From positions 28,210,001 to 28,274,000 of the forward strand of contig NC_043016.1 of assembly GCF_006345805.1 (NCBI RefSeq): DNA of 64,000 nucleotides, given 5' to 3'. A program made the position numbers and the translations under genes. The notes under the pieces are model-generated. The model did no database searches, was not told where the DNA came from, and saw only the letters and a program-made list of their open reading frames with translations. Positions within the stretch are counted from its first letter, which is position 1. The number at the start of each line of letters is the position of its first letter. This document shows, piece after piece, positions 1-51,790 of this stretch. Source of the DNA: Octopus sinensis. Taxonomy: Eukaryota.

Positions 1-212
1 GAGAGAGAGATGAATATCATGTGGTGAGGATCATTGATATCCTTCATTTTTGCCTCTGCAGAATTAAATATTAGAAATGTTATAACACTGTGGATGTAAC
101 ACGATGATGATGACTATTCTCTGTTGAATCTACACCATTTTTAATGTTATACTATTCCATTTGTTTTATTAAATATATAACTAATAATGATTTATTTTTC
201 TTTCCTTGACAG

Positions 213-404
213 TATTATTACTTTATTGGGTATTTCATCGTGTGGTTAATGGTTAATTTAGTCCAAATTGTGAAAAATCAACCAAGACTTGGTCACTATG
301 AATTTCAAAACTTATCGACACAGTTGATAAGAATTGAATTCTTTGTTACGTTTCTGTCAGGGCTGGCATATATGGCTTTTCCACATTTTTTGACTACCTT
401 GTTT
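213..404 (+). CDS. Exon (equivalent to exon 4) of plus-strand paralog, tandem TP53I11/PIG11-like membrane protein
   Basis: ttccttgacAG acceptor, GTAAGT donor at 405, 192 nt phase 0: YYYFIGYFIVWLMVNLVQIVKNQPRLGHYEFQNLSTQLIRIEFFVTFLSGLAYMAFPHFLTTLF. Upstream exons lie outside the window. Confidence 0.88.
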
Positions 405-2154
405 GTAAGTTTTCTCTTTTAATCTTTCTAATTTTCACCAGCTGACATTGGCAACATGTCTAATGTTGGATCTGTTAACTGTATGAATAATAAAACTGCT
501 GCTGTTAATAAATATTTATCTTGCTCCCAATTTGTCAGCATAATTAGGTATGGTCCGTTTCTCTGACCTGAGCTGGGTTACACAATCTGTAAGAGATGAA
601 AGTAGGGAATCACTGATTGCTGATTTTAAACTTTTCTAAAACAGACAGTACCATCTGTCATTGTGTTAATTTTTTTATCCTCCTCTTGTACAAAATAATG
701 ACAGTTTAGACTTACCGTAAAACATTATTAGCAAAATATGGTTCAAATACCTCCTTATTGAAAAGAAAGGTATACAAAAGGGAACAGTGACAACCTAAAC
801 ATATGGATAGGAGCACTAGAGGGAAAGCATATTGATGGCACAGTTGATTGATATGTGGTTTACTGGATTGTTGCCAGTTAAGCGTGTTAGTCATGGATAT
901 GCTACAGTTAACTATACCTTACTGTGCTACCTACATACAAAGGTAGCAGGGTTTGGGAGAACAGAAGGTAAGGTCTTGTTGCCCTTTCATGATTTAAATC
1001 TGGTAACTACTGAGAATTTGAACAGACAAAAGGGAGCTTCTCTTTGGTTTCTAATCAGCTAGAAATAACAGCAAGGAGTGGGAATGTGTGTATGAGATAA
1101 AGACTAGATGGTGGTGGCAAGAATGTCTTTGAATAAAGCTGACTTTGAGCCAAACAAAATAATGCTTTTTAGCCCTAGATTATTGCTAAGGAGTTGAACT
1201 ATCCTGAGGGATGTTCCAGTTTTGACCATCCCATCTTGATGTCAGTCCTATCGCCTTTGCCCTTCCATATTTTAAGATAGTAAAGTGGAGTTGAAGGGTG
1301 ATTTGGCTGTTATTTCTCGCAGTTATTTAATTTGAGCTATTGTATAGAACAGGCATGCTCAACCTCTTTTTGTTAGGCATGCCAATCACAATGCCCTTGG
1401 GTTCCAGTTTTCCCTTGCCTGTTAGTAGAGATCCTTCTGTCTCCCCTCATTTTATATGGCTTCTTTCATTTGTCTTTTATTACTTCCCATGTCACCATGT
1501 CATTGATGGAGTGGAAGAATTCCCTCACCAGCAATAAATCTGTGTCATTTTTATGGCTTCATCTCAGTTTTTTTTGTTTGGTACCAATTTCTTTGAGCAC
1601 TGGATGGATAGAAGAAGCACATTGCTGGTCAAATTGTTATCAAGTCTGAGAAAATGCTTAGTGCCCATTTCTTCTTGCTTTACTGGGGTTGACTTTGCCA
1701 TTCATCCTTTTGGAGTTAAGATATGTACTAGTTAAGCACCATCCCCTAGACTTTAGCAGCTTGTGCCAAAATTAGGAAGAATTAATATTATTATACAATA
1801 AGAAAAACCTATTTGAGGTTGTTCATAATTTTTGGTCACAAAAACCTAATTAAACTGCTTTTTTTTTTAACCCGTTAATAATTAAAGTCTCTTAATTATC
1901 AACAAGCAATTTAACATTTTAGTGATGATTACTTTATATTGATTGTATGTGTTTTGTGTATTTAAGTATGTATGTTATATTTAATGAACTAACTGCTATA
2001 AACAATATTAAATGTTTTATGTCATGCAAACAAGTTCTCTGCTTGACAACTTTCTACACAATTGAGAGAAAATATTTTCTAAAACTTTTTTTCTTCTTTT
2101 CTCTAATTTTCCCATAAAGTATAATTGTTATCCCAAGTTTTAAGTAGTGGTGTA

Positions 2155-2321
2155 CATTAGCATAGCTAGAGTGTGTGCCATCTGGAACGGCCCTTCCGTT
2201 TGCCGACCCCTGGACCTCACAAAAGACGTATTGCATACAGCAGACCCGAAAGTAATGCCCCTTTAAAAGTGCTGCTTGGAGCAGACCACCCCTACTGCCC
2301 ACCCCACTAGCTACACTAGTG
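2155..2321. mobile_element. hAT-type MITE (mirror copy at ~33590-33760; related fragment at ~57980-58101)
   Basis: Imperfect TIR cattagcatagctag / ctagctacactagtg; 8-bp flanks gtggtgta / gtgatgta (7/8 match). Confidence 0.6.
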
Positions 2322-2984
2322 GTGATGTATGTAATAAATTATTGTACTTTATGGTAATTATGTACTAATTGTATCTCAGTGATAATTGTTAGTTATAATG
2401 TATGTAATAAGTTCTTGCTGGAGAGGAAAAGCTCATTGAATCAACAGGAATGTGCCAGGGACTGTAGATAATCTGCAGCTGCCTGGTCAGTTTCACATGT
2501 CATATGCCAAGATGCAGGGCAACAAAGCTTGTTTTGCACTATCAAAATTAATTGCTGTTTTGGGGAGTCCATCAATCATGTTGACAGGAAAGGACAGGCA
2601 TTTTACCTTTTCCTTCTGTCTTTGTAAGATATAGCATGATGAGGGGTAACTGAAAGAACTGAAGATAGGGACTCTTTGTCTTCCAGTTTTCAGCAGAGAA
2701 GGGAGTGGGAGGTGTTGTTACAATAACTTGTTTAGAAAGGTGGGTGTTAGTGGCTAAGAAGGCCTAAACAAAAGGGCTTACTCTTCAGAAGCACTTTTAG
2801 GTCAGAAAATAACATACTAAAATAAGGTACTTGCCTTTGGTGGTTAGGCTAACCTAGCATCTGTGTGTTTGGATATAACAGTCTCCACTATTATATTTTC
2901 TTTGTATTGGCCTCGTTTTGATCCCTTCAGTATATTAAACAAGTAATTCCCACTACTGTTGTTATTTTCTTTCCATTTCTTCAG

Positions 2985-3125
2985 TCTCCAAAACCTGATC
3001 TAATCCATGTATATATAACTCAACTTGTGGGTGGATCGACACTTGGTGGTATTTGGTTATCTTGGTACTCTACGAGTTTTTACCTAGAAAGAGATATAAA
3101 ATCAGTTTTACTCTCTCGTGTTTAC
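2985..3125 (+). CDS. Exon (equivalent to exon 5) of plus-strand paralog
   Basis: ccatttcttcAG acceptor, GTAAGT donor, 141 nt phase 0: SPKPDLIHVYITQLVGGSTLGGIWLSWYSTSFYLERDIKSVLLSRVY; identical by eye to 32782-32922 (-). Confidence 0.9.
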
Positions 3126-4292
3126 GTAAGTATTGTTTTTTGATTTTTTTTTTTCCTTCTATTAAATGTGTATGTTTTACAAGTCAAATGTATCTAAATT
3201 TCTGATTTATTACTACCAATTATTGTATTTCATGGTGTGAATATTTCTAAAAGAGGCTGTTCTCTTTTATTTAGCCTTGCTATAATTAAATTGATGTTTG
3301 GTAGACAGGTACATGCTATTTGTTAATTAGTCTACCAGTTTATGCTAGTGGACATGCTAAAACAGCTTTGCTTGATTGAACAAATGATCAAAAAGTTTGT
3401 CAGCCAATTTAATATAGTTTCTGAATTGCAAGCTTGGTTCTTCATGATAGTTACACTATAGAAATAAGGGTAGTTGAACTTTTAGTCCTGCTTATAGCTG
3501 AATTGTATTGATGAGTATATAGCTTAATGAAACTATTAAGTCCTTCTTGTTTACTGCAAGGCCAGTAATAACTTGTTGATCTAATGAAAAGCAGCTGTAA
3601 TCATTTTGACCATGTGGTTATATATTGTAAGCTTTCCAGAGTATTTTACGGTTATATCAAGTGACTAATATCAACATTCTCTATTAGTGTATAGAATAAA
3701 TTGAAAATGCACAACATACAGTGTTATACAGAATATTCCACAAATCAGTGTGCATTTTTCTTTTTCCTTGCATTTTAATTAATCAAACAGATTTATCTAA
3801 TATTCTTAGATTTACATGGTGCTGTAGGTCATGCAGGCTTTTATGCTTTCCAATTCTGTATTTCATATTGTGAGATATTTTTCAGCCAGATTTTTATGTC
3901 TGGTTACTTTTCCTCAGATTGGAGCACATGCACACCAAGTAATATAGTTTGTCATTGACAGTAAAGTTCTAGGCCTTTTCAGTTCATGGCACTTTTGGCT
4001 TTCATAAAAGAAACAAAACTGTTATGGAATACATCAATGAACATTGGAGGAACTGTTATTTGGTTGGCCATTTTTCATAACTGGCTTTAGTTGGCCAAAT
4101 TTGCCATTCAACCTCTTAATATATAAATGTCTACAATACTCTTTAATTAGTTCCTGTTTATACAGTTTAAATGTATTTTTCTCACTCAAATTGTCAACTG
4201 TTGCAATAAGCTGTATTGTTTTTTGATTCTGTTCTCCATTTCAATGTTGTTTGCCAAAGTTTATCTGCGTTTTTTTTTTCTGTCTCTCTCAG

Positions 4293-4466
4293 ACAACAAT
4301 CATAATTTTTGCTGTGATAACCCAAAGCCACTTCATGCTAGGATATCCTAAACTGGAGAATATGTGGTTGTTCTTCACTTGGTTCCTTCCATTTGTACTT
4401 GCAATTGTTGGTCTCATTATGATAAATGCACGACGAAGATACCCAATAAAGAAAAAGGCAACATAA
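4293..4466 (+). CDS. Terminal exon of plus-strand paralog, ends in KKAT (KKxx motif)
   Basis: Polypyrimidine tract + AG at 4291-4292, phase 0: TTIIIFAVITQSHFMLGYPKLENMWLFFTWFLPFVLAIVGLIMINARRRYPIKKKAT*; AATAAA at 4504 and 4990. Confidence 0.9.
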   Translation, partial: TTIIIFAVITQSHFMLGYPKLENMWLFFTWFLPFVLAIVGLIMINARRRYPIKKKAT

Positions 4467-5044
4467 ATACTTTGCAAAAGACTTCATTTGCAACTCCTAT
4501 GCAAATAAATGGTAACGTGTTTGGCTGAAGCAAATATATTTTTTCATAATTTCTTTATAAATGTTTATTTTTGAAATGATTTTTCTCCTGGCACATTTTT
4601 TGAAGTAGAATTAACTAGCTATGAAGAACATGACATAATTTTAGATGGTAGTTATTTTCATTTGAGTCTAGATTTACTGTTTGTTTTTACTGATAAAGAT
4701 AATTAATATTCCAAATATTATGGAATTTTTAATCACCTCACAGGTGACTTTTCTATGAATCAAACAGTTTAGGCAATACTATATAATCTTCACATCATTT
4801 TTCCTCTAAAGTCTAATTGATATATTTCAATATAATAATCATTGCTCTTAGGAATAGTTGTAATTATATATATTTCTTTAATCCTGTTTATGTAACTATA
4901 ATTAAATCTACAATAGTTTAATGGCTTCACAGCAATTAAGTAAACAACTGATATCCGTCCCCTCACCCCCATCGCCTATTTCCAGTTTTAATAAATTGGG
5001 ACTGGTGTGTCAACTCATTTCAAAAAAATTATTTTTTTTTATTT

Positions 5045-8000
5045 TCAAGGTCTATTAGAGATCATTAATATTTTACAAATGTTGCAGGGGAGAATAATTC
5101 TTTGGTAAAAAAAATAAGAGACGCTTCTTTTCTGGGGTTTTTTTTTTTTTTTTTGAGAAACTGCAGGAGCTATTTGGAGGTCACTTTTCCTTTCTAACTT
5201 GCATTTTTGCTGTCTTACCTCTTTCCTCAATTCTGCTATCAAACACTACCTACTGGGATCATGCTGCTTATTGTTTATTTTTTTCCTTTGTTTCACAAAT
5301 TTGTCTTATCAATTAAATGATGGCACTTACCTACCAGATACACTCACCTTTTAGAATACTATCCAAGACAGTGTCAATATCTGAGGTGAATTACTCGAAG
5401 CAAATTCAATCTTTGAGTTCTTCCAAAAGCCCACAATGTTTGGATTCATACATGCTTGTGATTTGATCAAATTGAGCAGACATGCCCTAGTCACTGTAGC
5501 TTTATTCCTGCTTCAGGAGTTCTTCTACCTAAGCCCCCATGTAATATTAGATGTTTTCATTTTGATTTGAATATTCATGTCATGTTTGCTGTTAAAGACT
5601 TTGCCAGGGTTGTTGCATCATCTAGTTACACATTCCTGCCATGCAGTGTCCAATCTCTTAAAGCACAAATTCTGGTTCAACTGCTTCTTCATGTGTTGTG
5701 CCCCCACTTGGTAGATAATTCCACCTCACCTAGGTCTGCTTTAGGTATTCTCTCTGATATGCGTTAGTAGCTTGTCTCAGTTTTTTTTGGAGTGCTACCC
5801 CTAACACTATTAAATGCTGCCTTTGTAATTTGTGGTCTATTCATCACGGATGCCCATGGATGTTCCCCCACTAGTAATGGTCACAACATTACACATGAAA
5901 TAAATAAGAGAAATACTTTGTCCCATGCAGAAAGTGCAGCAGCTACTCGGTTCACTTTCCCTTTCCTATTCTTTTTTTATTCTTTATTCAAAGCTTTGAA
6001 TTTACAGACTAAATTTCATTGTTTTGCTGTTACCTTTGATGAATAATTAAGAAAAAGTGGTGTGTGTTGCTGGTTTTAGAATTAATGGAGCTACTTTACA
6101 TGTCTACTACGACAGTTACTCGTAGGATTTCCCATTTGGAAACACAAGTTTCCTAAATATTAAGTCTGCTTATTATTTTTGTTTTGCTTTTCGTGTTTTT
6201 GTTTTTATTCTTTTGCACCAAAGGTATGATGGCATGACCAATATTCCACTGAAATGATGGGTCACACTATCCTTATTATGTTGGTCAACATTCTAAGAGA
6301 TGACACTATATCAACATCTGAGATCACTTATGGCAAATTCAGTCTGAGTTCTTCACAAACCCCTCAGAATATTCAGATCATCCACTCTTGTTGTGCATTG
6401 ATGAAGTTCAGCAGAGATGTCCTTCTTACTGTGACTTCTTTCCTATCTGTCTAGGCCCCTAATTAGTATTAGATGCCTTTCATTCTGATTTTCTATAACA
6501 AATCTTCATAGCATGTTTCCTATAAAATACTCTGCTACTGTCATAGCATTATCTGCTTATACCCTCCTGTTTTGCAGTGTCCAATCTAGTAAATCAAATT
6601 CCTTCTCCATGTGTGTGCCCCATTTTGCAGATTATCCCACCTCTCCTTAGACTATGTCTTGGTATTCTTTCTTTCTGTGTTATTATCATTGGTTTACTGA
6701 CATAGCACTTTTTGGTGCTATCCTTAAGAATGTTACATACTGCTCCTTCCAATCTGTTTACTCAATTTTCATGGATAGCAATGGATCTCCTGCCACTGCC
6801 AATAACATTCCTCTTCTGTTGAGCCACAAGGCCTGGGCAGGTTTATACGAGGGATCAGCTGTTTCCCATGCAGTTTGATCCCCCCTCTCCACGCAGCTGG
6901 TGGCTCCAAGGGAACGATGGGTCGATACAGTTTGGTACCAGATGCGTCACAAGAGTTGTCGGTGATGACGTGTTGTGTCAGGCCGCCTTAGGAACTCCAG
7001 TTCCGGATTTTCTGTTGGGGTTTACTCCCTTAGCCTTCCCCAGGAGGGGGTCTTGATATCCAAAATATACATAAAATATATGATGTGAAGTATATAAAAA
7101 TTTATATAATGAGCAAGCTATAAATATATATAATATATAAAAATTAGCGAGAAAAAAAGCAGATATACAGTAAATATATAATTACACATTTATTGGATAG
7201 CTGTTGACTCTCAAGAGTTCCTCTGTCCTTTGGCGGGTTTTGTTTTTCATCCCGCAGGGTGTCCAATAAACACCCTCCTCACCAAGCAAGCTTGGTGGGG
7301 TTGCCAGTTTAGTCACCAACAGCCCGACCATGCAACAGGTTGTACTGGGTTACATGTTACCAGTAGCACTCAAAAGTGACCTGCCAACAACATTACACAT
7401 GAAATAAATATCAGAGATACTTTGCTGAATGCAGAAAGTGCAGGAGCAACTTGGGATCACTTTTCCTCTCTTACTCTCTTTACTCTTTTACTCTTTTACT
7501 TGTTTCAATCATTTGACTGCGGCCATGCTGGAGCACCGCCTTTAGTCGAGCAAATCGACCCCGGAACTTATTCTTTGTAAGCCCAGTACTTATTCTATCG
7601 GTCTCTTTTGCCGAACCGCTAAGTGACGGGGATGTAAACACACCAGCATTGGTTGTCAAGCAATGCTCGGGGGACAAACACAGACACAGAAACACACACA
7701 CACACACATATATATATACATATATACGACAGGCTTCTTTCAGTTTCCGTCTACCAAATCCACTCACAAGGCTTTGGTTGGCCCGGGGCTATAGCAGAAG
7801 ACACTTGCCCAAGATGCCACACAGTGGGACTGAACCCGAAACCATGTGGTTGGTTAGTAAGCTACTTACCACACAGCCACTCCTGTATGTTTTCTTTTAA
7901 GATTTTCAATTTACAGACTAAATTTAATTGTATTGCTGTTACCTTTGATGAATAATTAAGGAAAGGTGTTTGTGTTTGCAGGTTTTAGAACTGATAAAAC

Positions 8001-17599: not shown

Positions 17600-20160
17600 A
17601 TGTCCTGCGCCGTGAGGATGAAAGACTTGAGGTATTTCGTGTTGCAAGACAGTGTGTGAGAGAGAATCGTGATGTGGTAGGAGAGAAATGTGTTCGCATG
17701 GAGGATGGTTCACTTGCGCTAAATGAGGATGCAAAGAGAGAAGCTTGGAGACGCCACTATGAAAGGTTACTGAATGAGGAAAATGAATGGGATAAAGAGA
17801 GTCTGCCGAATGTTGACCCTACAGAGGGACCAGCTATCCGAGTTGATAGTTCCGTGGTAGCTAAGGCAATTAGAAGCATGAAGACAGGGAAGCCCCAGGC
17901 CCATCAGGAATTACTGCAGAGATGCTCAAAATATCTGGCAGTGTCGGCTATAACCTAGTCACCCGTATAGTCAACCAGGTGATACACGAAGGAGTCATAC
18001 CCAATGACTGGTGCAGCAGCATACTAGTCAACTGCTACAAAGGTAAAGGTGATGCCCTAGATACAAATAATTACAGAGGTATCAAGCTGTTGGATCAAGT
18101 AATGAAGGTTACGGAGAGGGTCATAGCCCAACTAATTAGAGAGAGAGTTAGTTTAGATGAGATGCAGTTTGGGTTCGTGCCAGGGAAAAGTACCACTGAT
18201 GCTATATTCCTGGTAAGGCAGCTGCAGGAGAAATACCTAGCCAAAGATAAGCCCCTGTACCTTGCTTTCGTTGACATGGAGAAAGCTTTTGATAGGGTCC
18301 CCCGATCCCTTATCTGGTGGTCAATGAGGAAACTAGGGATAGATGAATGGCTGGTGAGGACTGTGCAAGCCATGTACAGAGATGCCGTAAGTAAGGTTAG
18401 GGTTGGCAACATGTACACAGAAGAATTCAAAGTAGAGGTTGGGGTCCACCAGGGTTCAGTACTCAGCCCCCTCCTATTTATCATAGTACTCCAGGCAATT
18501 ACGGAGGAATTCAAGACAGGCTGTCCCTGGGAGCTCCTCTACGCTGACGACCTTGCTCTTATTGCTGAGTCACTATCAGAACTGGAGGAGAAGTTCCAGG
18601 TGTGGAAGGAGGGTTTAGAATCAAGGGGCCTTAGAGTCAACCTAGCTAAAACCAAAGTACTAATAAGTAGAAAGGTAGACAATCCACAAATATCTTCAGG
18701 AAGATGGCCCTGCTCGATCTGTAGAAAAGGTGTAGGTAGAAACTCTATAAGATGTACCCAGTGTAAGCTATGGACACATAAGAGGTGCAGCAATGTCAAA
18801 GGTAGGCTAACTGGGAAGATAGTTTTTGTATGTGGCAGATGCTCGGGAGCATTAACCTCCGAAAATCTGCAGAAAACAACTTCCGTCACTTTCCAGGGGG
18901 AAAAACTAGAAGTAGTTGATAGCTTCCGTTATCTAGGTGACCAAGTCAGTAGTGGGGGTGGGTGCGCTGAAAGTGTAACTGCTAGAATAAGAATAGCCTG
19001 GGCAAAGTTTAGGGAGCTCTTACCTCTGCTGGTGACTAAAGGCCTCTTGCTCAGAGTAAAAGGCAGACTGTATGATGCGTGTGTACGAACAGCCATGCTA
19101 CATGGCAGCGAAACATGGGCCGTGACTGCTGAGGACATGCGTAAGCTCGTGAGGAATGAAGCCAGTATGCTCCGATGGATGTGTAATGTCAGTGTACATA
19201 CTCGACAGAGCGTTAGCACCTTGAGAGAAATGTTGTACCTAAGTAGCATCAGTTGTGGTGTGCAAGAGAGACGATTGCGCTGGTATGGTCATGTGGCGAG
19301 AATGGATGAAGATAGGTGTGTGAGAAAGTGCCAATCCCTAGCAGTTGAGGGAACCCGTGGGAGAGGTAGACCCAGGAAAACCTGGGACGAGGTGGTGAAG
19401 CACGACCTTCGAACTTTAGGCCTCACTGAGGAAATGACCAGAGACCGAGACCTTTGGAAATATTCTGTACGTGAGAAGACCAGGCAGGACAAGTGAACCC
19501 AGCCCACTTATGAATGCCTTTCCTCCCTTGGACACAAAGACCGGCTGAAGCAAGCGAAGTCGATATAGAACCTCATCCGACGACAGACACCCATGCCAAC
19601 CCCCCATGCTTGCGAAGACATGTTGGGGCAAGCGAAATCGAAATCGAAACCGAATTGAACCAGCCAGAATCCCTGGCCTGGTGGTACGTAAAAAGCACTA
19701 TCCGACTCGTGGCCGTGGCACGTAAAATACTCCAATGCGACCGTACGACAGGCACCCATGCCAACCTCCTTTGCTTGTGAAGACATGTTGGGGCAAGCGA
19801 AATCGAAATCGAATTGAACCAGCCAGGATCCCTGGTCTGGTGGTACGTAAAAAGCGCTATCCAACTCGTGGCCGATGCCAGCACCGCCTCGACTGGCTTC
19901 CGTGCCGGTGGCACATAAAATACACCAATCTGACCGTGGCCGTTGCCAGCCCCGCCTGGCACCTGTGCAGGTGGCACGTAAAAAGCACCCACTACACTCA
20001 CGGAGTGGTTGGCGTTAGGAAGGGCATCCAGCTGTAGAAACATTGCCAAATTAGACTGGAGCCTGGTGCAGCCTTCTGGCTTCCCAGAACCCCGGTCGAA
20101 CCGTCCAACCCATGCTAGCATGGAGAACGGACGTTAAACGACGATGATGATGATGATGAT
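17600..20160 (+). mobile_element. 5'-truncated RTE-clade LINE with (GAT)n tail
   Basis: RT ORF 17656-19496 with one frameshift near 17890 (KTGK/APGPSGITAEMLK); motifs FVDMEKAFDRVP, GVHQGSVLSP, LYADD, RLRWYGHVARM, RGRGRPRKTW; 3' UTR ends gacgttaaacgacgatgatgatgat. Confidence 0.95.
17922..19496 (+). CDS. RTE reverse transcriptase (524 aa open portion) with embedded PHD-type zinc finger
   Basis: YADD motif; CSICRKGVGRNSIRCTQCKLWTHKRC...CGRC fits C4HC3 spacing. Confidence 0.9.
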   Translation: MLKISGSVGYNLVTRIVNQVIHEGVIPNDWCSSILVNCYKGKGDALDTNNYRGIKLLDQVMKVTERVIAQLIRERVSLDEMQFGFVPGKSTTDAIFLVRQLQEKYLAKDKPLYLAFVDMEKAFDRVPRSLIWWSMRKLGIDEWLVRTVQAMYRDAVSKVRVGNMYTEEFKVEVGVHQGSVLSPLLFIIVLQAITEEFKTGCPWELLYADDLALIAESLSELEEKFQVWKEGLESRGLRVNLAKTKVLISRKVDNPQISSGRWPCSICRKGVGRNSIRCTQCKLWTHKRCSNVKGRLTGKIVFVCGRCSGALTSENLQKTTSVTFQGEKLEVVDSFRYLGDQVSSGGGCAESVTARIRIAWAKFRELLPLLVTKGLLLRVKGRLYDACVRTAMLHGSETWAVTAEDMRKLVRNEASMLRWMCNVSVHTRQSVSTLREMLYLSSISCGVQERRLRWYGHVARMDEDRCVRKCQSLAVEGTRGRGRPRKTWDEVVKHDLRTLGLTEEMTRDRDLWKYSVREKTRQDK

Positions 20161-30325: not shown

Positions 30326-30899
30326 CAGTTGTTTAATAAAGGTACAGAGCACCACGACGCATAATCACGGAGGTGTGAGTTCGAGTCTCATAGCCGGCCA
30401 CCAACACTTTTTAATTTAAGGCGTAGGAGTGGCTGTGTGGTAAGTAGCTTGCTTACGAACCACATAGTTTCGGGTTCAGTCCAACTGCATGCCACCTTTT
30501 ACTATAGAGTCGGGCCAACCAAAGCCTTGTGAGTGGATTTGGTAAACGGAAACTGAAAGAAGCCCATCGTATATATGTATATGTGTGAATATGTTTGTGT
30601 GTCTGCGTTTGTCCCCGCAAACATCGCTTGACAACCGATGCTGGTGTGTTTACGTCCCTGTAACTTAGCGGTTCAGCAAAAGAGACTGATAGAATAAGCA
30701 CTAGGCTTACAAAGAATAAGTCCTGGGGTCAATTTGGTCGACTAAAGGCGGTGTTTCAGTCAAATGACTGAAACAAGTAAAAGAGTAAAAGAGATACATT
30801 AATGTGAAAAGCACAAATTTTATTAACAGAGATGATGGAATTAAAGGGAGGTAAAAAATTTTCTAATGTTTAATAGCAGGTAAAAACAAACTTTAAAAA

Positions 30900-33800
30900 A
30901 AAAAAAGAATTTTTTTTTGAAATGAGTTGACATGCCAGTCCCAATTTATTAAAACTGGAAATAGGCGATGGGGTGAGGGGACGGATATCAGTTGTTTACT
31001 TAATTGCTGTGAAGCCATTAAACTATTGTAGATCTAATTATAGTTACATAAACAGGATTTTAAAAAAAATATGTAATTACAGCTATTCCTGACAATGATT
31101 ATTATATTGAAATATATCAATTAGACTTTAGAGGAAAAATGATGTGAAGATTATATAGTATTGCCTAAACTGTTTGATTCATAGAAAAGTCACCTGTGAG
31201 GTGATTAAAAATTCCATAATATTTGGAATATTAATTATCTTTAATCAGTAAAAACAAACAGTAAATCTAGACTCAAATGAAAATAACTACCATCTAAAAT
31301 TATGTCATGTTCTTCATAGCTAGTTAATTCTACTTCAAAAAATGTGCCAGGAGAAAAATCATTTCAAAAATAAACATTTATAAAAGAAATTATGAAAAAA
31401 TATATTTGCTTCAGACAAACACGTTACCATTTATTTGCATAGGAGTTGCAAAATGAAGTCTTTTGCAAAGTATTTATGTTGCCTTTTTCTTTATTGGGTA
31501 TCTTCGTCGTGCATTTATCATAATGAGACCAACAATTGCAAGTACAAATGGAAGGAACCAAGTGAAGAACAACCACATATTCTCCAGTTTAGGATATCCT
31601 AGCATGAAGTGGCTTTGGGTTATCACAGCAAAAATTATGATTGTTGTCTGAAGAGAGACAGAAAACAAAAACGCAGATAAACTTTGGCAAACAACATTGA
31701 AATGGAGAACAGAATCAAAAAACAATACAGCTTATTGCAACAGTTGACAATTGAGTGAGAAAAATACATTTAAACTGTATAAACAGGAACTAATTAAAGA
31801 GTATTGTAGACATATATTAAGAGGTTGAATGGCAAATTTGGCCAACTAAATAACAGTTCCTCCAATGTTCATTGATGTATTCCATAACAGTTTTGTTTCT
31901 TTTATGAAAGCCAAAAGTGCCATGAACTGAAAAGGCCTAGAACTTTACTGTCAATGACAAACTATATCACTTGGTGTGCATGTGCTCCAATCTGAGGAAA
32001 AGTAACCAGACATAAAAATCTGGCTGAAAAATATCTCACAATATGAAATACAGAATTGGAAAGCATAAAAGCCTGCATGACCTACAGCACCATGTAAATC
32101 TAAGAATAATTAGATAAATCTGTTTGATTAATTAAAATGCAAGGAAAAAGAAAAATGCACACTGATTTGTGGAATATTCTGTATAACACTGTATGTTGTG
32201 CATTTTCAATTTATTCTATACACTAATAGAGAATGTTGATATTAGTCACTTGATATAACCGTAAAATACTCTGGAAAGCTTACAATATATAACCACATGG
32301 TCAAAATGATTACAGCTGCTTTTCATTAGATCAACAAGTTATTACTGGCCTTGCAGTAAACAAGAAGGACTTAATAGTTTCATTAAGCTATATACTCATC
32401 AATACAATTCAGCTATAAGCAGGACTAAAAGTTCAACTACCCTTATTTCTATAGTGTAACTATCATGAAGAACCAAGCTTGCAATTCAGAAACTATATTA
32501 AATTGGCTGACAAACTTTTTGATCATTTGTTCAATCAAGCAAAGCTGTTTTAGCATGTCCACTAGCATAAACTGGTAGACTAATTAACAAATAGCATGTA
32601 CCTGTCTACCAAACATCAATTTAATTATAGCAAGGCTAAATAAAAGAGAACAGCCTCTTTTAGAAATATTCACACCATGAAATACAATAATTGGTAGTAA
32701 TAAATCAGAAATTTAGATACATTTGACTTGTAAAACATACACATTTAATAGAAAGGAAAAAAAATCAAAAACAATACTTACGTAAACACGAGAGAGTAAA
32801 ACTGATTTTATATCTCTTTCTAGGTAAAAACTCGTAGAGTACCAAGATAACCAAATACCACCAAGTGTCGATCCACCCACAAGTTGAGTTATATATACAT
32901 GGATTAGATCAGGTTTTGGAGACTGAAGAAATGGAAAGAAAATAACAACAGTAGTGGGAATTACTTGTTTAATATACTGAAGGGATCAAAACGAGGCCAA
33001 TACAAAGAAAATATAATAGTGGAGACTGTTATATCCAAACACACAGATGCTAGGTTAGCCTAACCACCAAAGGCAAGTACCTTATTTTAGTATGTTATTT
33101 TCTGACCTAAAAGTGCTTCTGAAGAGTAAGCCCTTTTGTTTAGGCCTTCTTAGCCACTAACACCCACCTTTCTAAACAAGTTATTGTAACAACACCTCCC
33201 ACTCCCTTCTCTGCTGAAAACTGGAAGACAAAGAGTCCCTATCTTCAGTTCTTTCAGTTACCCCTCATCATGCTATATCTTACAAAGACAGAAGGAAAAG
33301 GTAAAATGCCTGTCCTTTCCTGTCAACATGATTGATGGACTCCCCAAAACAGCAATTAATTTTGATAGTGCAAAACAAGCTTTGTTGCCCTGCATCTTGG
33401 CATATGACATGTGAAACTGACCAGGCAGCTGCAGATTATCTACAGTCCCTGGCACATTCCTGTTGATTCAATGAGCTTTTCCTCTCCAGCAAGAACTTAT
33501 TACATACATTATAACTAACAATTATCACTGAGATACAATTAGTACATAATTACCATAAAGTACAATAATTTATTACATACATCACCACTAGTGTAGCTAG
33601 TGGGGTGGGCAGTAGGGGTGGTCTGCTCCAAGCAGCACTTTTAAAGGGGCATTACTTTCGGGTCTGCTGTATGCAATACGTCTTTTGTGAGGTCCAGGGG
33701 TCGGCAAACGGAAGGGCCGTTCCAGATGGCACACACTCTAGCTATGCTAATGTACACCACTACTTAAAACTTGGATAACAATTATACTTTATGGGAAAAT

Positions 33801-35911
33801 TAGAGGAAAGAAGAAAAAAAGTTTTAGAAAATATTTTCTCTCAATTGTGTAGAAAGTTGTCAAGCAGAGAACTTGTTTGCATGACATAAAACATTTAATA
33901 TTGTTTATAGCAGTTAGTTCATTAAATATAACATACATACTTAAATACACAAAACACATACAATCAATATAAAGTAATCATCACTAAAATGTTAAATTGC
34001 TTGTTGATAATTAAGAGACTTTAATTATTAAGGGGTTATAAAAAAAAAGCAGTTTAATTAGGTTTTTGTGACCTAAAATTATGAACAACCTCAAATAGGT
34101 TTTTCTTATTGTATAATATTAATTCATCCTAATTTTGGCACAAGCTGCTAAAGTCTAGGGGATGGTGCTTAACTAGTACATATCTTAATAACTCCAAAAG
34201 GATGAATGGCAAAGTCAACCCCAGTAAAGCAAGAAGAAATGGGCACTAAGCATTTTCTCAGACTTGATAACAATTTGACCAGCAATGTGCTTCTTCTATC
34301 CATCCAGTGCTCAAAGAAATTGGTACCAAACAAAAAAAACTGAGATGAAGCCATAAAAATGACACAGATTTATTGCTGGTGAGGGAATTCTTCCACTCCA
34401 TCAATGACATGGTGACATGGGAAGTAATAAAAGACAAATGAAAGAAGCCATATAAAATGAGGGGAGACAGAAGGATCTCTACTAACAGGCAAGGGAAAAC
34501 TGGAACCCAAGGGCATTGTGATTGGCATGCCTAACAAAAAGAGGTTGAGCATGCCTGTTCTATACAATAGCTCAAATTAAATAACTGCGAGAAATAACAG
34601 CCAAATCACCCTTCAACTCCACTTTACTATCTTAAAATATGGAAGGGCAAAGGAGATAGGACTGACATCAAAATGGGATGGTCAAAACTGGAACATCCCT
34701 CAGGATAGTTCAACTCCTTAGCAATAATCTAGGGCTAAAAAGCATTATTTTGTTTGGCTCAAGTCAGCTTTATTCAAAGACATTCTTGCCACCACCATCT
34801 AGTCTTTATCTCATACACACATTCCCACTCCTTGCTGTTATTTCTAGCTGATTAGAAACCAAAGAGAAGCTCCCTTTTGTCTGTTCAAATTCTCAGTAGT
34901 TACCAGATTTAAATCATTAAAGGGCAACAAGACCTTACCTTCTGTTCACCCAAACCCTGCTACCTTTGTATGTAGGTAGCACAGTAAGGTATAGTTAACT
35001 GTAGCATATCCATGACTAACACGCTTAACTGGCAACAATCCAGTAAACCACATATCAATCAACTGTGCCATCAATATGCTTTCCCTCTAGTGCTACTATC
35101 CATATGTTTAGGTTGTCACTGTTCCCTTTTGTATACCTTTCTTTTCAATAAGGTGAACCATATTTTGCTAATAATGTTTTACGGTGAGTCTAAATTGTCA
35201 TTATTTTGTACAAGAGGAGGACAAAAGATTAACACAATGACAGATGGTACTGTCTGTTTTAGAAAAGTTTAAAATCAGCAATCAGTGATTCCCTACTTTC
35301 ATCTCTTACAGATTGTGTAACCCAGCTCAGGTCAGAGAAACGGACCATACCTAATTATGCTGACAAATTGGGAGCAAGATAAATATTTATTAACAACAGC
35401 AGTTTTATTATTCATACAGTTAACAGATCCAACATTAGACATGTTGCCAATGTCAGCTGGTGAAAATTAGAAAGATTAAAAGAGAAAACTTACAAACAAG
35501 GTAGTCAAAAAATGTGGAAAGGCCATATATGCCAGCCCTGACAGAAACGTAACAAAAAATTCAGTTCTTATCACCCATGTCAATAACACTTCAGGTTCAT
35601 AGTGACCAAGTTTAGGTTGCTTTCGTATAATTTGGACTAAATTAGCCACTAACCACAGGCAGAAGTTCCCAAGAACAAAGTAGAGAAACTGTCAAGAAAA
35701 GAAAAAAAAAAAAGATCATTAGTTATATATTTAATAAAACAAATCAGAATTAAAACAATTATTATTAGAAATAACTAGAATAGTATAGAAGAGAATAGTC
35801 ATCATCATCGTGTTACATCCACAGTGTTATAACATTTCTAATATTTAATTCTGCAGAGGCAAAAATGAAGGATATCAATGATCCTCACCATATGATATTC
35901 ATCTCTCTCTC
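30900..35911 (-). repeat. Right arm of the ~5 kb inverted duplication
   Basis: Reverse complement of 1-~5040 with scattered substitutions and short indels. Confidence 0.97.
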
Positions 35912-38900
35912 TCTCTCTGTCTGTCTAAGTGAGAGAGAGAGAAAGAGGGAGAGACAGATTCTGCCTGGAGGGTGTGAGGTGAATCTGTGGAAAAGAGGAC
36001 CTAGGAGGACGTAGAGTAAAGTGGTGCAAAATGACCTTCAGATGTTAAGCAATTAGCAAAACTTGAGAAGACCTGTCCACCTAAGTAATCTGGACATCCT
36101 AAAGGCATGTTGTTTATGCCTCTGTCCTTGAAAAATCTCTCCTCCATCTGTGTGTCACTCACTTCATTCACCTCTCCTTTATCTCCCACTCTTGCAATTT
36201 TCACACAATCTATCCTTCAACATGTTCCTCACCCCCCCCCCTTCTCCCTGTATTCACTCACTGCATTTTCCTCCCTTTCATTTCCAGTGCGGGTGAGCTT
36301 ATCTGCCCATTCACCCTATCCAATCCTCTGTACCACTTTACTCATATACACTCCCTTGTAACTTGATGGTATACCCCAACCCATTTTCACCATCTTCTCT
36401 CTCACTCCTCTCCTGGGTTAGCCACCTCCCTCAATACCACTAGCTCTTCAGACAACAGAGTTTAGTTTTGCAAGTTTCTTGGTGACCCCACTGCAGTTGG
36501 TACCACATGAAAAGCATCCAGTACACTCTGTAAAGTGGTAGCCATTAGGAAGGTTATTCAGTTGTGGAAACCACACCAAAGCAGAAAGTAGGGCTTGGTA
36601 TTGTCCTTTGGCTTGTTGGTTTCTGTTAAACTGTCCAACCCATGCCAGCATGGAAAGCAGGCATTATATGATGATGTTTTATTAATTAGACTTGTGTCAT
36701 TACCATCATCATAATTCTGATTCAACGTGCATTTTCTACTGAAGCTTCATACTTATTACTGGAGCAAAGTATTGCTGAACATGGGATCTTGGGTAGAGAA
36801 CAAGTTTCTAAACTACAAATGATTACAATATATGAGACTATAAAAATCTGCAAGACCTTCCTATGATTTAAAGGAAAATGTAAAAAACAAGATGCTTTCC
36901 CTCACAACCTTGCTACCAAGCAAATGGCCGGTCAAAATCTATTCTAATTTAAAAAGGGAAAGAGAAACAATCAAACTTAGATTTGTACATATACATACAT
37001 ACATACAACCTATAAAATGTGACTTTGTAGCAGTATTTACTCTACCCCACCTGGACACACACCATACCTGCAGACACTCTCACACATACATGTACCTTGT
37101 ACAAAGAACAGAAAATCAAACATGTCAATGACAACAACAAATGATTTAAGGCTGCAACTGAGTTTCAAGTCATCACTTGCTGAAGTTCCTTCTCTTCTAG
37201 GAACTACAAATAGTGAAAACAAGGCAACGAGCAGAGAGGGGGGTTGATTATATCAAGGAATAAGGAATCAAACTCATTCTAAAGATGATATACACTACAG
37301 GAAATTAAGAAAATTAGAAAACCCTAGGGTGAAGGAAGGGGCTAAGATTGAAGCCTAGTGCAGCCATCTGGTTTGCCAGCCCTCAGTCAAAATTGTCCAA
37401 TCCATGCTAGCATTGAAAGCGGATATTAAACGATGATGATGATGAATATTATTCAACATACACTAGATTTTGATAATGGAATCAGTCAAGGTGTTAATTA
37501 TCAACTATCAGTTTCTGCTTTGACTCCAGAAGACGTTAGTATCATCGTTCATGAGAAAACTACAGAAATATAACCCAGATAGTTTACGTACAGTTGGAGA
37601 AGGAAGATAAAGTTAAAAGAGTCTACAGTACATAACTTCAAAAAATAAAGATCCTATGATGAATAGAAGCAGAAAAAAACTGGGTATTGTATCATGACAA
37701 TGTACTGTGAATAGAACAAACAGCAGCCATAATTAGTGAACACAAAATGGAGCAAAACAAGACATAGAAGTAAAGGGCTTTTTGATAGCAGAGTGGGTAG
37801 CAGCCCTAGTTAAGTTGAAATCAGAAGATATACTTGTAATGCACAGTGACAGGTTGTGTTTACCAACTCTGGCTATTTACGCCTTAGTTAATCAGACATT
37901 ATGGTTATAAACTATTAGAAGAACAAAATAGATACTTCAGAAGGACTGACTACTAAGACATTCAAGTGATCGACCAAGATGCAAAAATAAGAGAGAGATA
38001 GTTGGGAGGGGGTATAGAAAAATATAATAGAGGACAAAACCAGATTATAAGACATGTAATTTGTATCAAGATGCCCTCTTCTTCAATCAACTACAAGAAA
38101 AGTTCTGAGACAAGAACAAATCATTAAAGCCAATATTTATTGATTTGGAGAAGACATCTTTGACAATGTACCATGAAGAATGGCTGTGAGAACAATGTAT
38201 GCAACATATAGGTGCTAAAAGCAAGGTAAGTGTTTGCAACCAGTTCAAATAGGTAAGCATCTACCAGCACTATCCCTGTTTCTTTCAGTTTAAGACTGAG
38301 TAGTCCCACAGTTCTCAAAGCTAAATTAGTTGCAGAATTAAAGAAAACCTCCCAAATTTGGAAGATGGGATTCAAACAGAGAGACTCAATAGTCAATTTA
38401 GCAAAGACAAATGTTTTAGTTAGCAGAAAATACAACAGAATGCTAGTACCAACTTGGAAATGGTTGTGTTTGATATACAGAAAGTCAGCAGGGAGGTACA
38501 ACTGTTGTACACTGTGTACCAAATGTAAATAATGGGTGGATAAAAGGTGTAGTGGTATCGCAGACAGGCTGACAGAGAAGTATTTCAGATGATACACAGA
38601 GGTAGTTAACAATAAAGTCCCTCAACTGCCCAGAAGACTCATTCATCATCATCATCATCATTTAACATCCGTTTTCCATACTGACTTGGGTTGGATGGTT
38701 TGATAGGAGCTGGCAAGCCAGAGGGCTACAAAAGGCTCTAGTCACCTGTCCTGGTGTGATTTATATAGCTGGATCCTCTTCATAATGCCAGCTATTTTAC
38801 AGAGTGTACAGTGGGTGATAAGCAACTTGTTATCTAGATGACCTAATCATTACTATCAAGGGGATTGAGGTAACAGAAATGGTAGCTTCACAAATGATCT

Positions 38901-39372
38901 GTTAATAGATGGCTTCTCTCTCACTGAAGAACAGACTTTATGATGCGAGATTTAAAGGTAGTGAGGTTTGAGCATAAGAATGCGGAGGACATTGGGTGGA
39001 AACTGGGAACAAACAACGTAAACACGTTCTATAACTATGAATGTGGAATTAAAACATTGCTGCTGGCACTCTGGTACAACCAAATCTACTTCTCAATATA
39101 TGACCTCATATTATCCATTTCTAGTCTGTAACGTGCACTCTGGCTTTTGTCAATTCATTTTGTCCGTTACATTTTACCTTTTCACTAGTTTCAATCATCA
39201 GGCGGCCATGCTAAGGCACTGTTCTGAAGGGTTTTAGTCAAACCAATAGACCACAGGACTTTCCTTTAAAAGCATGGTGTTTATTCTCTTAGTCTCTTTT
39301 GGCCAAACTGCTAAGTTAAGGGAGACATAAACTAACACCAGTTATCAGCAGTGCTGGGGGATAAAGACAGAG

Positions 39373-39412
<40 letters not shown>

Positions 39413-42400
39413 CAACTCAAGTATTAACAGAAGTATTAATACATGCTAAATATTAACAGAAGCTCAGGGAAGGAAAGAAAGGTGGTTTTACATTTTGAGG
39501 AAAGTCCAAGAGTAAAGGAAGACAGGAAAAAAAAAAAAATCGCCAACAATTCACATGTAGTTCCAGTTTATATATATATATACATACATACATTCACAAC
39601 AGGTTTCTTTCAGTTTCCATCTGTCAAATCCATTCACTAAGCTTTCGTTAGAAGACACTTGCCCAAGGACCAAGGTGCTATGCAGTGAAACTGAACCCAT
39701 AAGCATATGGTTCAGAACTTCTTACCCCACAACTGTACCTATGCCTCATATGAAATATGTTTAATATATCTTTTTCTGCTGGAATACAAAAGACATTGCA
39801 AATGAGAGTTACCAAAAGCCACAGCCTACCATATTAAACAGTAAAAATACTTACAAATGTAGTGAACTTGTCCATGATAAACATAGCATGATATGCAAGC
39901 GTGAGGATTTGGATTTTTAGCCCCTGCAAAAATGAAAATATAAAGAATGAGGGAGAGAGAAAGAGTGTGAAAATGAGTCAACACATTGTTCAATCAATCA
40001 CAATAGAAATGCCACATTTTATTTAGCTTCGAAGGCACAAACATTTTTTCATTTTTGCTTTTTTTAAATTTTTTTGGAGTAAATATTTTCAATGCTTCCA
40101 GTAACCATGGATTTGTAGCAGAGTAATCTCTAAACTGATGCAGCAGATCAAAGACAATAATAGTAAGGTCTGAATTTACAATTGCTGGGTATAATTTAAT
40201 CCAGTTTTCTTATTTGCAAAATAGGAGTTTGTTAGCCCCAGCCATAAAGATGTAAAAACTTAGAAGTCAATTTAACTGATGATCGTGACAAACATATTAA
40301 TTCTTGAAAAAAATGGAAGTCAACTCTAGAATTAGGAAAGATGAAAATAAAAACTAATTAGACTAGCATTGCTTTAACAACATCACTAATTTAAAGTACT
40401 GAATATGTAAAAAATAAATATGGTGACCAAGTCCAGATATGGTTTGTTTAAAAAATAATTTATAAAATGAAGCCACCAAATCTCTAGAGGATTAAAACCA
40501 TTTAGAAAACTAGGTTAACTCACCAAAATACGACTCCACATCATTGTTCCAATAACAGATTCATCCTTGCTCATGCGACATTTGTATAAAACAAAAGATG
40601 CCCCTACATGAATCGCTCCATATATCCGCATTAAAGCTAAATGTGATGCTTCTATCGGCGTCCCTTCACTCACCTAAAATAAAATGTAGCTACAAATTAT
40701 ATAATACTTGTTAATTATAATTTTTCATAATGATTTTGACAACAAATCATTTAACATTTTAAAACTAATATACTGAACAACCAATAAACTATGCAAACTT
40801 TTAGAAAATGCACACACACAAAAAAAAATAGAAAATTTTATTTTATTAAATTTGAATATTTGCAAATATAAATGTAGAATTTACAGGAATCAAGAATCTT
40901 CATAATATGAAAAGTTTTGGTTCGGAGAAAAAGCATTAATCTTCACTGAGTAACTGTCACATTACTAACAGGAACTTCAACTTTCTACCATAGCAAATCT
41001 TAGGATGTGTTTTTTTTACTTCTTGAACATGGTGTAGTTGAGGTGGATTAGTGTATATGGCTGGGTAAACATGGTTACATGGTTGGCATGAACAAGGACA
41101 TACTTAAGCATTAATCACTGTCAAAAATAATTAAATACCAAATATGAATGAGAATACTTAAATATTAACTTGGATAGTAGGAAGCTTCAGATGGTAAAGC
41201 TGCAGCTTACCAACCTTAACAGTTGATAATCTGTTATCCATCACCAGAACAGGGCTCCGTTAGGGGCCTATGCACAAAACAAACATTATTTCGACATGTT
41301 AAGTAATGAAATTTTTTTCAGTAAATGTCACCCTGCAGTTGCTCTGCATTCTAAAAGAAATATTTTTAATAAAAAAAAAAAACTATGACAGTACTAAAGA
41401 AAAAAAAATACAACCATTCTCTGTCTCCCTCGTGATCTTGACTTCAAGATTACAAAACAGGTGAACTTGATGTAGCTGATGCATGCTTGGAACTTCATTT
41501 AACCAATGTTTACATAACAGATCTTTATTACATTCCAATCACACTGATATGTAGGTTTTCTATATTACATTGAACATATATCAATCACTTTAACCCACTT
41601 CTCTACTATTTCTACACCCATCTCAGTTGGTATGACACTGTTTTTGATATCCTCTCATTTTGCTATTCAGCCTCCGACCCACAACTTGCAGTGTACCTAT
41701 CATTATATTCATTCTCTACCTCTCTCTCTCTCTCTTGTACCATCCCAACAACATTTTCCTCTTTATACCCATATTCAGACCCTCTTTTTTCTCTTACCCC
41801 CATGGCAGTCACTCCTATTCAAGCTGAATCACATTTGTCTTGTAATGAACGGTGAAACAGACTCATCAGTCATAGTTGCCTGAGTAAAATGGCTGGTGTT
41901 TGAATGGAGACATTCAAACACCAGCTACTACTTAATCATTGTCAAATACATGACAACTGCTCTAATACTCTTCTTCATTTTGCTAGTCTCTCATGGTTGA
42001 GAAAGACAATTCCACAATTTCTTGCTAAATAACCTGCAGAGATAATATTGTTTACAGTGACCAAATGTTTGTGCTATACATTAGTTTATTCCCTCCTTCA
42101 AATCGACATTGCATGTACAGTTGCATGGTGTGAAGTATTTTGTTCATAAGCACAAAGCATCATCTGGTCTGGGAATTGAATCCATGACCTTACAATCTTC
42201 AGTATAACACCTCTGATCACTAGGCCCCATGCTCTCTCTAATACTGGTGCTACAATAAAATACACCCAGCATACTAAAGCTGGTTTGTGAAAGAAAGGGC
42301 ACCCAGCCAAAGAAAAATGGAACAAGTGACAATTGCTCTTCTGACTTGTCAAAGACAGTAGCTTGAAGTTAAAACTAACTCGGGCTGCGATGACCCATAC

Positions 42401-49000: not shown

Positions 49001-49681
49001 GCCCGTTATTTACAGATAGTTACGATATAAACACATCCCGGACTTTTTGAGCCTTAATGGAGATGATCAAAAAGGTATTAACGATAAATTTGACATGTGA
49101 ATCTCCTTATTTACATTAAATAAGAACAAATACACACCAACTTCATTAACCGGGTGTCGTTGCGGGTGGAAATTTAGAATTTCTTACGACAGGCATTTTA
49201 AGTGTGAAAGGGTACTTCAAACTTTGCAACAAAGAAAGATTATATCAAAACTAATTTAACATCTTTATTATATCAAGAAGTTTTTTGTTTTTTTTTTTAA
49301 AAATAAGCATTTCCAAATGATGAAGACTCTTAAGAATAACATTATTTCTAGGAAAGGTTCTTCGGAATTCTACAGGTAAAACATGAATAACTCTAAGAAA
49401 GTTTTAGTATCTTATTCCTTAATTAGATCTTTTTAGAAATAAAAAAAAATTATTAATTTCACAGCAATAAATAGTTATTTAAAAAGGCATTATTTTTGGC
49501 AATTACTAACCTGTCTGCGAAGAAACTCGTTCGGGAATAACAGAGCAAATATTCCTAGAAAAAATTCAATCAACATATCAGCCAACAGCCATGTTTTTAC
49601 TGATAGAAATAATGCTGGCGAAAAAATGAATGGCATAGCAATTATTCGGACATAATCGAAAGTAGTTAAATTGAAATCCAT
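31474..49681 (-). CDS. Complete six-exon gene: 299-aa ~8-TM protein with two tandem TP53I11/PIG11-like repeats and C-terminal KKAT. Exons 49681-49511, 40673-40524, 39923-39855, 35688-35494, 32922-32782, 31647-31474
   Basis: All introns GT..AG and phase 0; exon lengths 171+150+69+195+141+174 nt give one open frame from ATG to TAA. WLLADMLIEFFLGIFALLFPNEFL, LMRIYGAIHVGASFVLY and GLKIQILTLAY resemble human TP53I11 ([50 protein letters not shown]) as recalled; remote similarity, not searched. Confidence 0.88.
45173..46630 (-). mobile_element. Disrupted IS630/Tc1/mariner-superfamily transposase (DD35E spacing) in intron 1
   Basis: HTH-like DWRRLATELNVP, catalytic MDESNFN, IDNAPC and PYSPMFNPIE (35 residues between second D and E); frameshifts, stops and a MITE insertion. 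Confidence 0.85.
46124..46594. mobile_element. Palindromic MITE with perfect 8-bp TSD inserted in the transposase
   Basis: TIR ggcaagacttcc / ggaagtcttcc; TSD CCAATCAC at 46116-46123 and 46595-46602; transposase frame (RNGGDWRRL) is continuous once removed. Confidence 0.88.
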
Positions 49682-51100: not shown

Positions 51101-51740
51101 ATAAAACTGCTGCTTATGGCAATAGGGAAACTAGAAAAGTAAATTTGTCAAAAGAAAATATTCAGACATTCATAGTTTAGAAGATAACCTCATAATCATG
51201 TTTTGGGTAGTCATTTCCAAAATGGGGATTTTGAGCATATGTGGTCATTAGCTACCATACACACATATACATAGGTGTAGGAGTGACTGTGTGGTAAGGA
51301 GCTTGCTTACCAACCACATGGTTCTGGGTTCATTACCACTACATGGCACCTTGGGCAAATGTCTTCCACTATAGCCTTGGGCCAACCAAAGCCTTGTGAG
51401 TGGATTTGGTAGACTGAAACTGAAAGAAGCCCGTCGTATCATCGTCATCATCGTTGTTTAACGTCCGCTTTCCATGCTAGCATGGATTGGACGGTTCAAC
51501 TGGGGTCTGGGAAGCCAGAAGGCTGCACCAGGCCCAGTCTGATCTGGCAGTGTTTCTACAGCTGGATGCCCTTCCTAACGCCAACCACTCTGTGAGTGTA
51601 GTGGGTGCTTTTTACATGCCACCGGCACATGTGCCAGACAAAGCTGGCAAACGGCCATGATCGGATGGTGCTTTTTACATGCCACCGGCACGGAGACCAG
51701 ACGAAGCTGGCAATCAGACAAAATGTATATATACATATTA

Positions 51741-51790
<50 letters not shown>

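Follow-up and report, generated by a model that had tools for sequence, protein, structure and literature searches.

A short diverged island in exon 4 of a homogenized inverted gene duplicate in Octopus sinensis is very probably an unconverted remnant of older paralog divergence

We asked why a segment of ~220 nt stays strongly diverged between two inverted gene copies that are nearly identical on either side of it. The window, by which we mean the whole 64,000-nucleotide stretch of O. sinensis DNA that was analyzed, carries inverted arms at 1-5049 on the plus strand and 35911-30891 on the minus strand. Self-BLAST aligned these arms at 96.9% identity overall, and outside the island they are ~99.3% identical. 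When mismatches between arm A and arm B were counted in 50-nt bins, nearly all of them fell between ~115 and 345: positions 1-114 held a single mismatch and the ~4.7 kb at 346-4800 differed at ~0.65% of sites. A three-way alignment bounded the island at A 123-341 and B 35789-35557, with an A-to-B identity of only 71 to 76%. The 219 nt of the island contain at least 45 mismatches, where 1.4 would be expected at the background rate (Poisson P = 7e-51). The left edge is abrupt and lies in an intron; on the right, divergence tapers off midway through the exon. The parts of the duplication are the following.

1-5049, plus strand: arm A, comprising the end of intron 3, exons 4 to 6, and 0.6 kb of 3' flank; it runs off the window leftward.
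OX597829.1 of O. vulgaris (L001 13934 onward): ortholog of arm A, at 98.3-99.3% identity.
123-341, plus strand: divergent island of copy A, from the alignment; 45 B-unique sites lie within 115-345.
35557-35789, minus strand: divergent island of copy B, the ancestral-like version, which agrees with the cuttlefish ortholog.
30891-37344, minus strand: recently homogenized stretch of arm B; with the island excluded, it is 97.5-100% identical to copy A.
37535-41000, minus strand: older part of the duplication in B, with the exon 2 and exon 3 regions and an unalignable middle of intron 3.

Copy B is a complete gene of six exons (window 49681-31474, minus strand) that encodes a product of 299 aa, and all of its exons are in phase 0 with canonical splice sites. 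The two genes stand tail to tail across an inter-arm spacer of 25.8 kb. The affected exon is exon 4 of these six, the number under which it had originally been described.

49511-49681, minus strand: exon 1 of copy B, 57 codons, with the ATG at 49681; it has no counterpart upstream of copy A.
40524-40673, minus strand: exon 2 of copy B, 50 codons; its protein is 100% identical in O. bimaculoides.
39855-39923, minus strand: exon 3 of copy B, 23 codons.
35494-35688, minus strand: exon 4 of copy B, 65 codons.
32782-32922, minus strand: exon 5 of copy B.
31474-31647, minus strand: exon 6 of copy B, including the stop codon.
213-404, plus strand: exon 4 of copy A, 64 codons, phase 0, with canonical AG/GT.
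2985-3125, plus strand: exon 5 of copy A, with the same nucleotide sequence as in copy B.
4293-4466, plus strand: exon 6 of copy A, including the stop codon, with the same nucleotide sequence as in copy B.

The 5' part of copy A lies off the window, and the O. vulgaris copy A was used in its place. Homology between A and B reaches its limit at L001 9558, equivalent to window 41000, ~0.3 kb upstream of exon 2, and the 9.5 kb upstream of O. vulgaris A showed no resemblance to exon 1 of B or to the 23 kb upstream of B exon 2. Copy A is thus a partial duplicate with exons 2-6, which to judge from the sequence appears to be without B's first exon and promoter region.

These comparisons also exposed two faulty public gene models. 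Neither public annotation has a complete model of copy A, the sole model being the truncated P0001 of O. vulgaris (L001 9869-18363). That model begins at an internal ATG of exon 2; the open frame of O. vulgaris A exon 2, together with an AG acceptor, reaches 44 codons upstream of its start. The second faulty model is LOC106882167 of O. bimaculoides (P0063, 109 aa). The B side of the window matches O. bimaculoides CM046616.1 (L002) at 88-91% identity, and an assembly gap of 784 Ns there (L002 20825-21608, corresponding to CM046616.1 ~34,075,524-34,076,307) starts 9 nt before the expected exon 3 of B. The gap at exon 3 means that LOC106882167 consists of exons 1-2 plus intron read-through and is a truncated model, not a short gene. 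We rejected a loss of copy B exons 3-6 in O. bimaculoides, whether by deletion or by a lineage-specific insertion, because the break is this 784-N gap.

Codon alignment of exon 4 (A 213-404 against B 35688-35494) showed 19 amino-acid replacements and one codon missing in A, all within codons 1-43, and only three codons in the whole exon with silent differences alone (codons 25, 44, and 56). The copies encode the same protein over codons 44-65. All of these counts, the identical remainder of the exon, and the near-identity of the intron upstream (the single mismatch in 1-114) reproduced what had originally been reported. The island is not confined to the exon: in copy A, 123-212 is intronic and 213-341 exonic, and the ~90 nt of intron are diverged (K 0.36) on a par with the exonic part (K 0.29). 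A second diverged patch had been described at ~123-160; its divergence was confirmed but its separateness was not, as it is the intronic part of the same island, split by a conserved block at 163-189. This 27-nt block, ATTTGTTTTATTAAATATATAACTAAT (163-189 in A, 35749-35723 in B), has no A/B difference although it lies in the middle of the diverged intronic sequence. Allowing for position, such an identical block inside the island has P ~0.02. It bears a CTAAT motif ~25 nt upstream of the acceptor and possibly holds the branch point.

The gene product is a DUF8292 (PF26941) protein, a two-repeat, multi-pass membrane protein. Precomputed PF26941 matches include P0001, the O. vulgaris ortholog of A, and P0063, the O. 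bimaculoides ortholog of B. A phmmer search of 1.84 billion representatives, in which close relatives are collapsed, returned 38 matches, 18 of them at E <= 1e-10, with a cuttlefish cluster at 7.8e-88 over residues 4-240. Members of the family occur in cuttlefish (58% identical), bivalves, Lingula, and Branchiostoma (amphioxus), and all are annotated as "uncharacterized"; a literature search on DUF8292 found no paper naming the family. Copy B aligns with these members end to end and has the same two-repeat helix bundle. Among the DUF8292 loci examined, the octopus locus differs from the others in being the only one with an inverted partial duplicate.

The AlphaFold2 model of copy B (pLDDT 91, pTM 0.89) consists of an N-terminal helix and then two repeats of four helices each; the helices span 7-24, 28-48, 66-89, 95-122, 129-153, 164-186, 201-224, 230-258, and 263-289. 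Comparing one half of the family profile with the other showed them to be homologous (hhalign probability 98.8%, E = 5e-17), and DUF8292 arose as an internal duplication of a four-helix unit. On the model, the island takes in helix 129-153, loop 154-163, and the first turns of helix 164-186. This agrees with its earlier placement in the last helix of repeat 1 and the linker between the repeats, and includes the start of repeat 2 as well. Pfam scans gave nothing significant, the best hit being a weak one of the cuttlefish protein P0002 to PF14936, p53-inducible11 (E 0.079), and a sequence search of the PDB with the protein found no match. Foldseek against the PDB returned a single modest match (TM 0.53, E 0.012) to 8xqw chain O, from the Chlamydomonas Ycf2-FtsHi complex. 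The PF14936 and 8xqw matches are possible leads to relatives of DUF8292.

We determined which copy had changed by polarizing the 38 amino-acid differences between A and B in exons 2-4, with the cuttlefish ortholog as the outgroup. The outgroup state was kept by B at 19 of these positions, by A at 3, and by neither at 16 (P = 0.0009). Within the island, B matched the outgroup at 10 positions and A at none (P = 0.002), and every polarizable island replacement falls on copy A. Copy A has also changed at three arginines conserved in the family, Arg73, Arg90, and Arg152. Copy B is strongly constrained: exons 1-2 of B compared with O. bimaculoides gave dS 0.14, dN 0.008, and omega 0.06. The ratio of nonsynonymous to synonymous changes was 20:4 on the branch between A and B versus 2:9 within B (P = 0.0004). 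Were half of the silent changes but hardly any replacements assigned to B, omega on the A lineage alone would exceed 1; such a value depends on the noncoding yardstick chosen, and along the older part of the duplication the available yardsticks have a mixed conversion history of their own, with K from 0.03 to 0.21.

The conversion history of the arms was read from O. vulgaris A compared with window B. Identity was 82-92% in the exon 2 region and 95-98.5% in the exon 3 region; the middle of intron 3 (39665-37535) was not alignable. Further on, identity was 97.5-99% in the left flank (1.4 kb of intron 3), ~80% in the island, and 98.5-100% in the right flank (4.7 kb). Since O. vulgaris A and window B differ by only 1.0-1.7% on either side of the island (1.7% on the left, 1.0% on the right), the flanks were homogenized before the window genome and the O. 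vulgaris reference split. O. vulgaris holds an A-type island with 3 differences in ~219 nt, so the island, too, existed before the split; this is what the comparison of orthologous exons, proposed with the original prediction, gave for arm A. Exchange continued afterward. Outside the island, window A and window B differ by 0.65% versus 1.07% between window A and O. vulgaris A, and over 346-4848 the unique sites numbered 32 in O. vulgaris A, 15 in window A, and 7 in window B. The window arms are therefore mutually closest, which indicates exchange since the split. Sites at which the two window arms agree with each other and differ from O. vulgaris A begin at 445, so this later tract ended within ~100 nt of the right edge of the island. 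The claim that conversion homogenizes the arms is thus borne out, in the form of a mosaic of old and young tracts, with window A closer to window B than to its own O. vulgaris ortholog.

Ongoing hypermutation of the island was considered and rejected, as 3 differences in ~219 nt between the two genomes correspond to the background rate.

These data lead us to conclude that the island is very probably an old, unconverted remnant of copy A's own sequence. Copy B is the complete, conserved parental gene and copy A a partial duplicate starting ~0.3 kb upstream of exon 2, which has evolved fast wherever it stayed unconverted, that is, in exon 2 and in the island. Conversion has homogenized ~6.4 kb between the middle of intron 3 and a point 0.6 kb beyond the stop codon, in at least one episode before the split from the O. 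vulgaris reference and at least one after it, and both tracts ended at or within ~100 nt of the right edge of the island. For conversion to be efficient, long stretches of near-identity are required, and heteroduplex with many mismatches is rejected by mismatch repair. A patch that is 25-30% diverged and bears indels is for that reason a barrier in itself. At the island, which is ~25-30% diverged with indels at its left edge, heteroduplex may have been blocked or rejected by mismatch repair, and a derived A segment that moved into the constrained B would presumably have been removed by purifying selection. For the whole reading, in which such a barrier together with purifying selection is also the reason why the old divergence persisted, we see the balance of for and against as even. 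The pattern is of a known kind. Adaptive maintenance of A's version is not needed for the data. Selection against conversion may also have acted, and the two conversion episodes ending near the same edge would fit it as well. A counterpoint to our account is that copy A is unlike free-drifting DNA in its conservative replacements, its kept frame and splice sites, and its 27-nt block.

One alternative is that both copies are functional, that A has a new property located in helix 5, the loop joining the repeats, and the first part of repeat 2, and that converted haplotypes are selected against. It is close to the original prediction, in which selection keeps this segment different and the segment is a specificity-determining region. 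Nei-Gojobori counts for the island were S 25.5 and N 100.5, with 4.3 silent and 25.7 replacement changes, giving dS 0.19, dN 0.31, and omega 1.6 (Fisher P = 0.43); dS ranged over 0.14-0.19, and omega was 2.3 when the O. vulgaris A sequence was used. Exon 2, which was never converted, gave dS 0.14-0.16, dN 0.19-0.20, and omega 1.2-1.4, and pooling island and exon 2 gave omega 1.41 (P = 0.46). The point estimates (1.6-2.3 for the island, 1.2-1.4 for exon 2) lean toward a selected difference, but omega never differs from 1 (P = 0.43-0.46), and a ratio above 1 for the island as compared with the rest was not established. We also simulated random mutation by scattering as many substitutions as were observed over the B sequence. 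This simulation yielded ~20 island replacements per 32 substitutions versus 19 observed, and 17 versus 17 observed for exon 2. The number of replacements is thus the random expectation, and the scarcity of silent changes is what neutrality predicts in these AT-rich codons. The description of the island as almost purely nonsynonymous is accurate as a count and fails as a sign of selection, and it carries a general caution: a run of replacements with few silent changes can be the neutral expectation in AT-rich codons.

Comparison with exon 2 bears on the same question. Total divergence was 30/126 in the island exon versus 25/150 in exon 2 (P = 0.17), with K nominally highest in the island exon (0.29 versus 0.19). 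The dS of the island equals that of exon 2, so the island is as old as the rest of the unconverted duplicate; and since exon 2 shows a like pattern of dS and omega, the island is nothing special within copy A. The idea of a specificity-determining region is accordingly not supported as it was stated, and neither is that of selection keeping the segment different, given that ~90 nt of intron belong to the island and are equally diverged. Further points against a selected difference are that copy A is without exon 1, which encodes helices 1-2, and has no known promoter, that Arg73, Arg90, and Arg152 are replaced in it, and that the O. vulgaris copy stops 10 codons early and has 4 more replacements in exon 5. 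In its favor are the sharp peak within homogenized flanks, the repeated conversion with a newer tract ending ~100 nt from the same edge, and the conservative nature of the replacements, with frame and splice sites kept and the branch-point block conserved. A divergence peak of this kind is also a recognized signature of selected sites in converting duplicates (PMC3924837; PMC3728101). Weighing both sides, we regard a selected difference as unlikely, if well short of negligible.

A second alternative is that copy A is a dead fragment drifting neutrally and that the island is merely the gap between two independent B-to-A conversion tracts. Several features noted above point this way: the absence of exon 1, omega near 1 with as many replacements as simulated, the loss of conserved arginines, and the fact that neither public annotation holds a complete copy A model. 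The differing divergence of the two flanks (1.7% on the left, 1.0% on the right) fits two tracts. O. vulgaris A adds a premature TGA, in place of CGA, 10 codons ahead of the normal stop, and a cluster of 4 replacements in exon 5 at which window A, window B, and cuttlefish all agree (FYLERD); within it, O. vulgaris A reads CIK versus YLE in both window copies and cuttlefish.

Against a dead fragment stands the quality of the replacements. In the island their mean BLOSUM62 score is 0.05 versus -0.73 for random ones (P = 0.015), and 0 new charged or Pro residues were found versus 3.9 expected (P = 0.013). Conservativeness was significant for the island helix alone (P = 0.0035), for exon 2 (P = 0.029), and in combination (P = 0.004). 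Copy A has no stop codon (joint chance ~0.07), and neither stop nor frameshift occurs in 279 nt at 17-24% divergence. Its one exonic indel is a single codon and in frame, whereas the adjoining noncoding DNA is full of indels. The splice sites are all canonical, and the 27-nt branch-point block is conserved. From its sequence, copy A still looks coding, or looks to have been so until recently, and is not clearly dead. We consider the dead-fragment explanation improbable.

Equally doubtful, in our estimation, is a bolder form of the selected difference. In it, copy A would be a live, neofunctionalized paralog starting from a new first exon, residues in helix 5, in the loop between the repeats, and at the beginning of repeat 2 would set the partner or substrate specificity of DUF8292 proteins, and selection against conversion in both directions would have held these 43 codons apart while their surroundings were homogenized again and again; the segment would then point to the functional surface of the family.

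The two remaining alternatives fare much worse. A short conversion tract from a third, more distantly related paralog could have introduced one of the island versions; a single such tract would account for the shortness of the patch and its abrupt left edge, and the island exon is nominally more diverged than exon 2. This is nevertheless very improbable, since the B version is ancestral-like, the A version matches the divergence style of A's exon 2 at the same dS, the searches found only two copies of exon 4 in the window and a single one at the O. vulgaris locus, and protein searches with B exons 4+6 and with B exons 1-3 matched no octopus proteins other than P0001 and P0063, the only close octopus relatives among ~15 billion proteins (other members are <=58% identical). 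Assembly chimerism, that is, a mis-join or collapsed haplotype in a difficult-to-assemble repeat, is scarcely credible: inverted repeats do break assemblies, and O. bimaculoides has its N gap exactly at this gene, but the window has no N runs, an A-type island with the same edges occurs in the independent O. vulgaris chromosome assembly, the B-type island preserves the reading frame and is the version nearest to the cuttlefish ortholog, and splice signals are kept in both versions.

Divergence peaks in converting duplicates are known from human red/green opsin exon 5, RHD/RHCE, and the Tigriopus GOT1 paralogs (PMC3924837, a review citing Innan 2003 PNAS; PMC3728101). The octopus locus resembles these systems in its near-identical flanks, in paralogs that are closer within a genome than orthologs are between genomes, and in a short, sharply bounded segment of high divergence that overlaps coding sequence. 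Their peaks coincide with sites at which the copies are known to differ in function, and the two copies are complete genes that are expressed. The octopus island, in contrast, includes intron, has an omega not above 1, and shows its polarized changes in one copy, which is the copy without exon 1. Arm-to-arm gene conversion has reportedly been described in palindromes of primate sex chromosomes, by Rozen et al. in Nature in 2003. The octopus locus is similar in having inverted arms with a spacer and ~99% identity by intrachromosomal conversion; its arms differ from those palindromes in being small (5-10 kb), only partly homogenized, and interrupted by an internal unconverted patch.

In the CYP21A2/CYP21A1P pair, a functional gene and a defective duplicate exchange sequence (PMC3843699). 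The likeness lies in a constrained parental gene next to a partial or defective copy, in mosaic conversion tracts, and in the purifying selection expected against a defective segment entering the functional gene. Octopus copy A differs from CYP21A1P in having no frameshift or stop in the window and in its conservative replacements, and for these reasons its status as a pseudogene is not established.

As the evidence stands, the locus is a clear and well-delimited example of how conversion between a constrained gene and a truncated, inverted duplicate of it leaves a discontinuous mosaic. Should selection hold the island after all, it would mark a functionally discriminating surface of an uncharacterized lophotrochozoan and amphioxus protein family and would provide a cephalopod example of conversion opposed by selection.

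We note several repeats and mobile elements around the locus. The inter-arm spacer contains an intact ORF of 524 aa (window 17922-19496, plus strand) with a PHD-like zinc finger and an RVT_1 domain (E 2.9e-32); it is probably a non-LTR retrotransposon of recent origin. The remnant of a DDE_3 (PF13358) transposase, split by a frameshift, lies in intron 1 of copy B (window 45173-46068, minus strand). Exact look-up of this transposase ORF gave no match and a homolog search found no octopus protein; its closest proteins, 56% identical, come from metagenome assemblies and the microsporidian Cucumispora. At 54413-54641 and 57438-57666 lies a perfect direct repeat of 229 bp (100% identity, copies 3.0 kb apart), which may mark the two ends of an element inserted recently or may have arisen by recent duplication in place. 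At L001 1687-5300, upstream of O. vulgaris copy A, we found ~3.6 kb of imperfect short tandem repeat that is open in three frames and reads as a "protein" rich in Leu, Ser, Tyr, and Cys. A dispersed repeat family of ~400 bp, with copies 77-92% identical and in both orientations, occurs in the window at 7479-7884, 30419-30793, 43536-43909, 51256-52029, and 60526-60958, and one of its copies sits just past the outer end of arm B.
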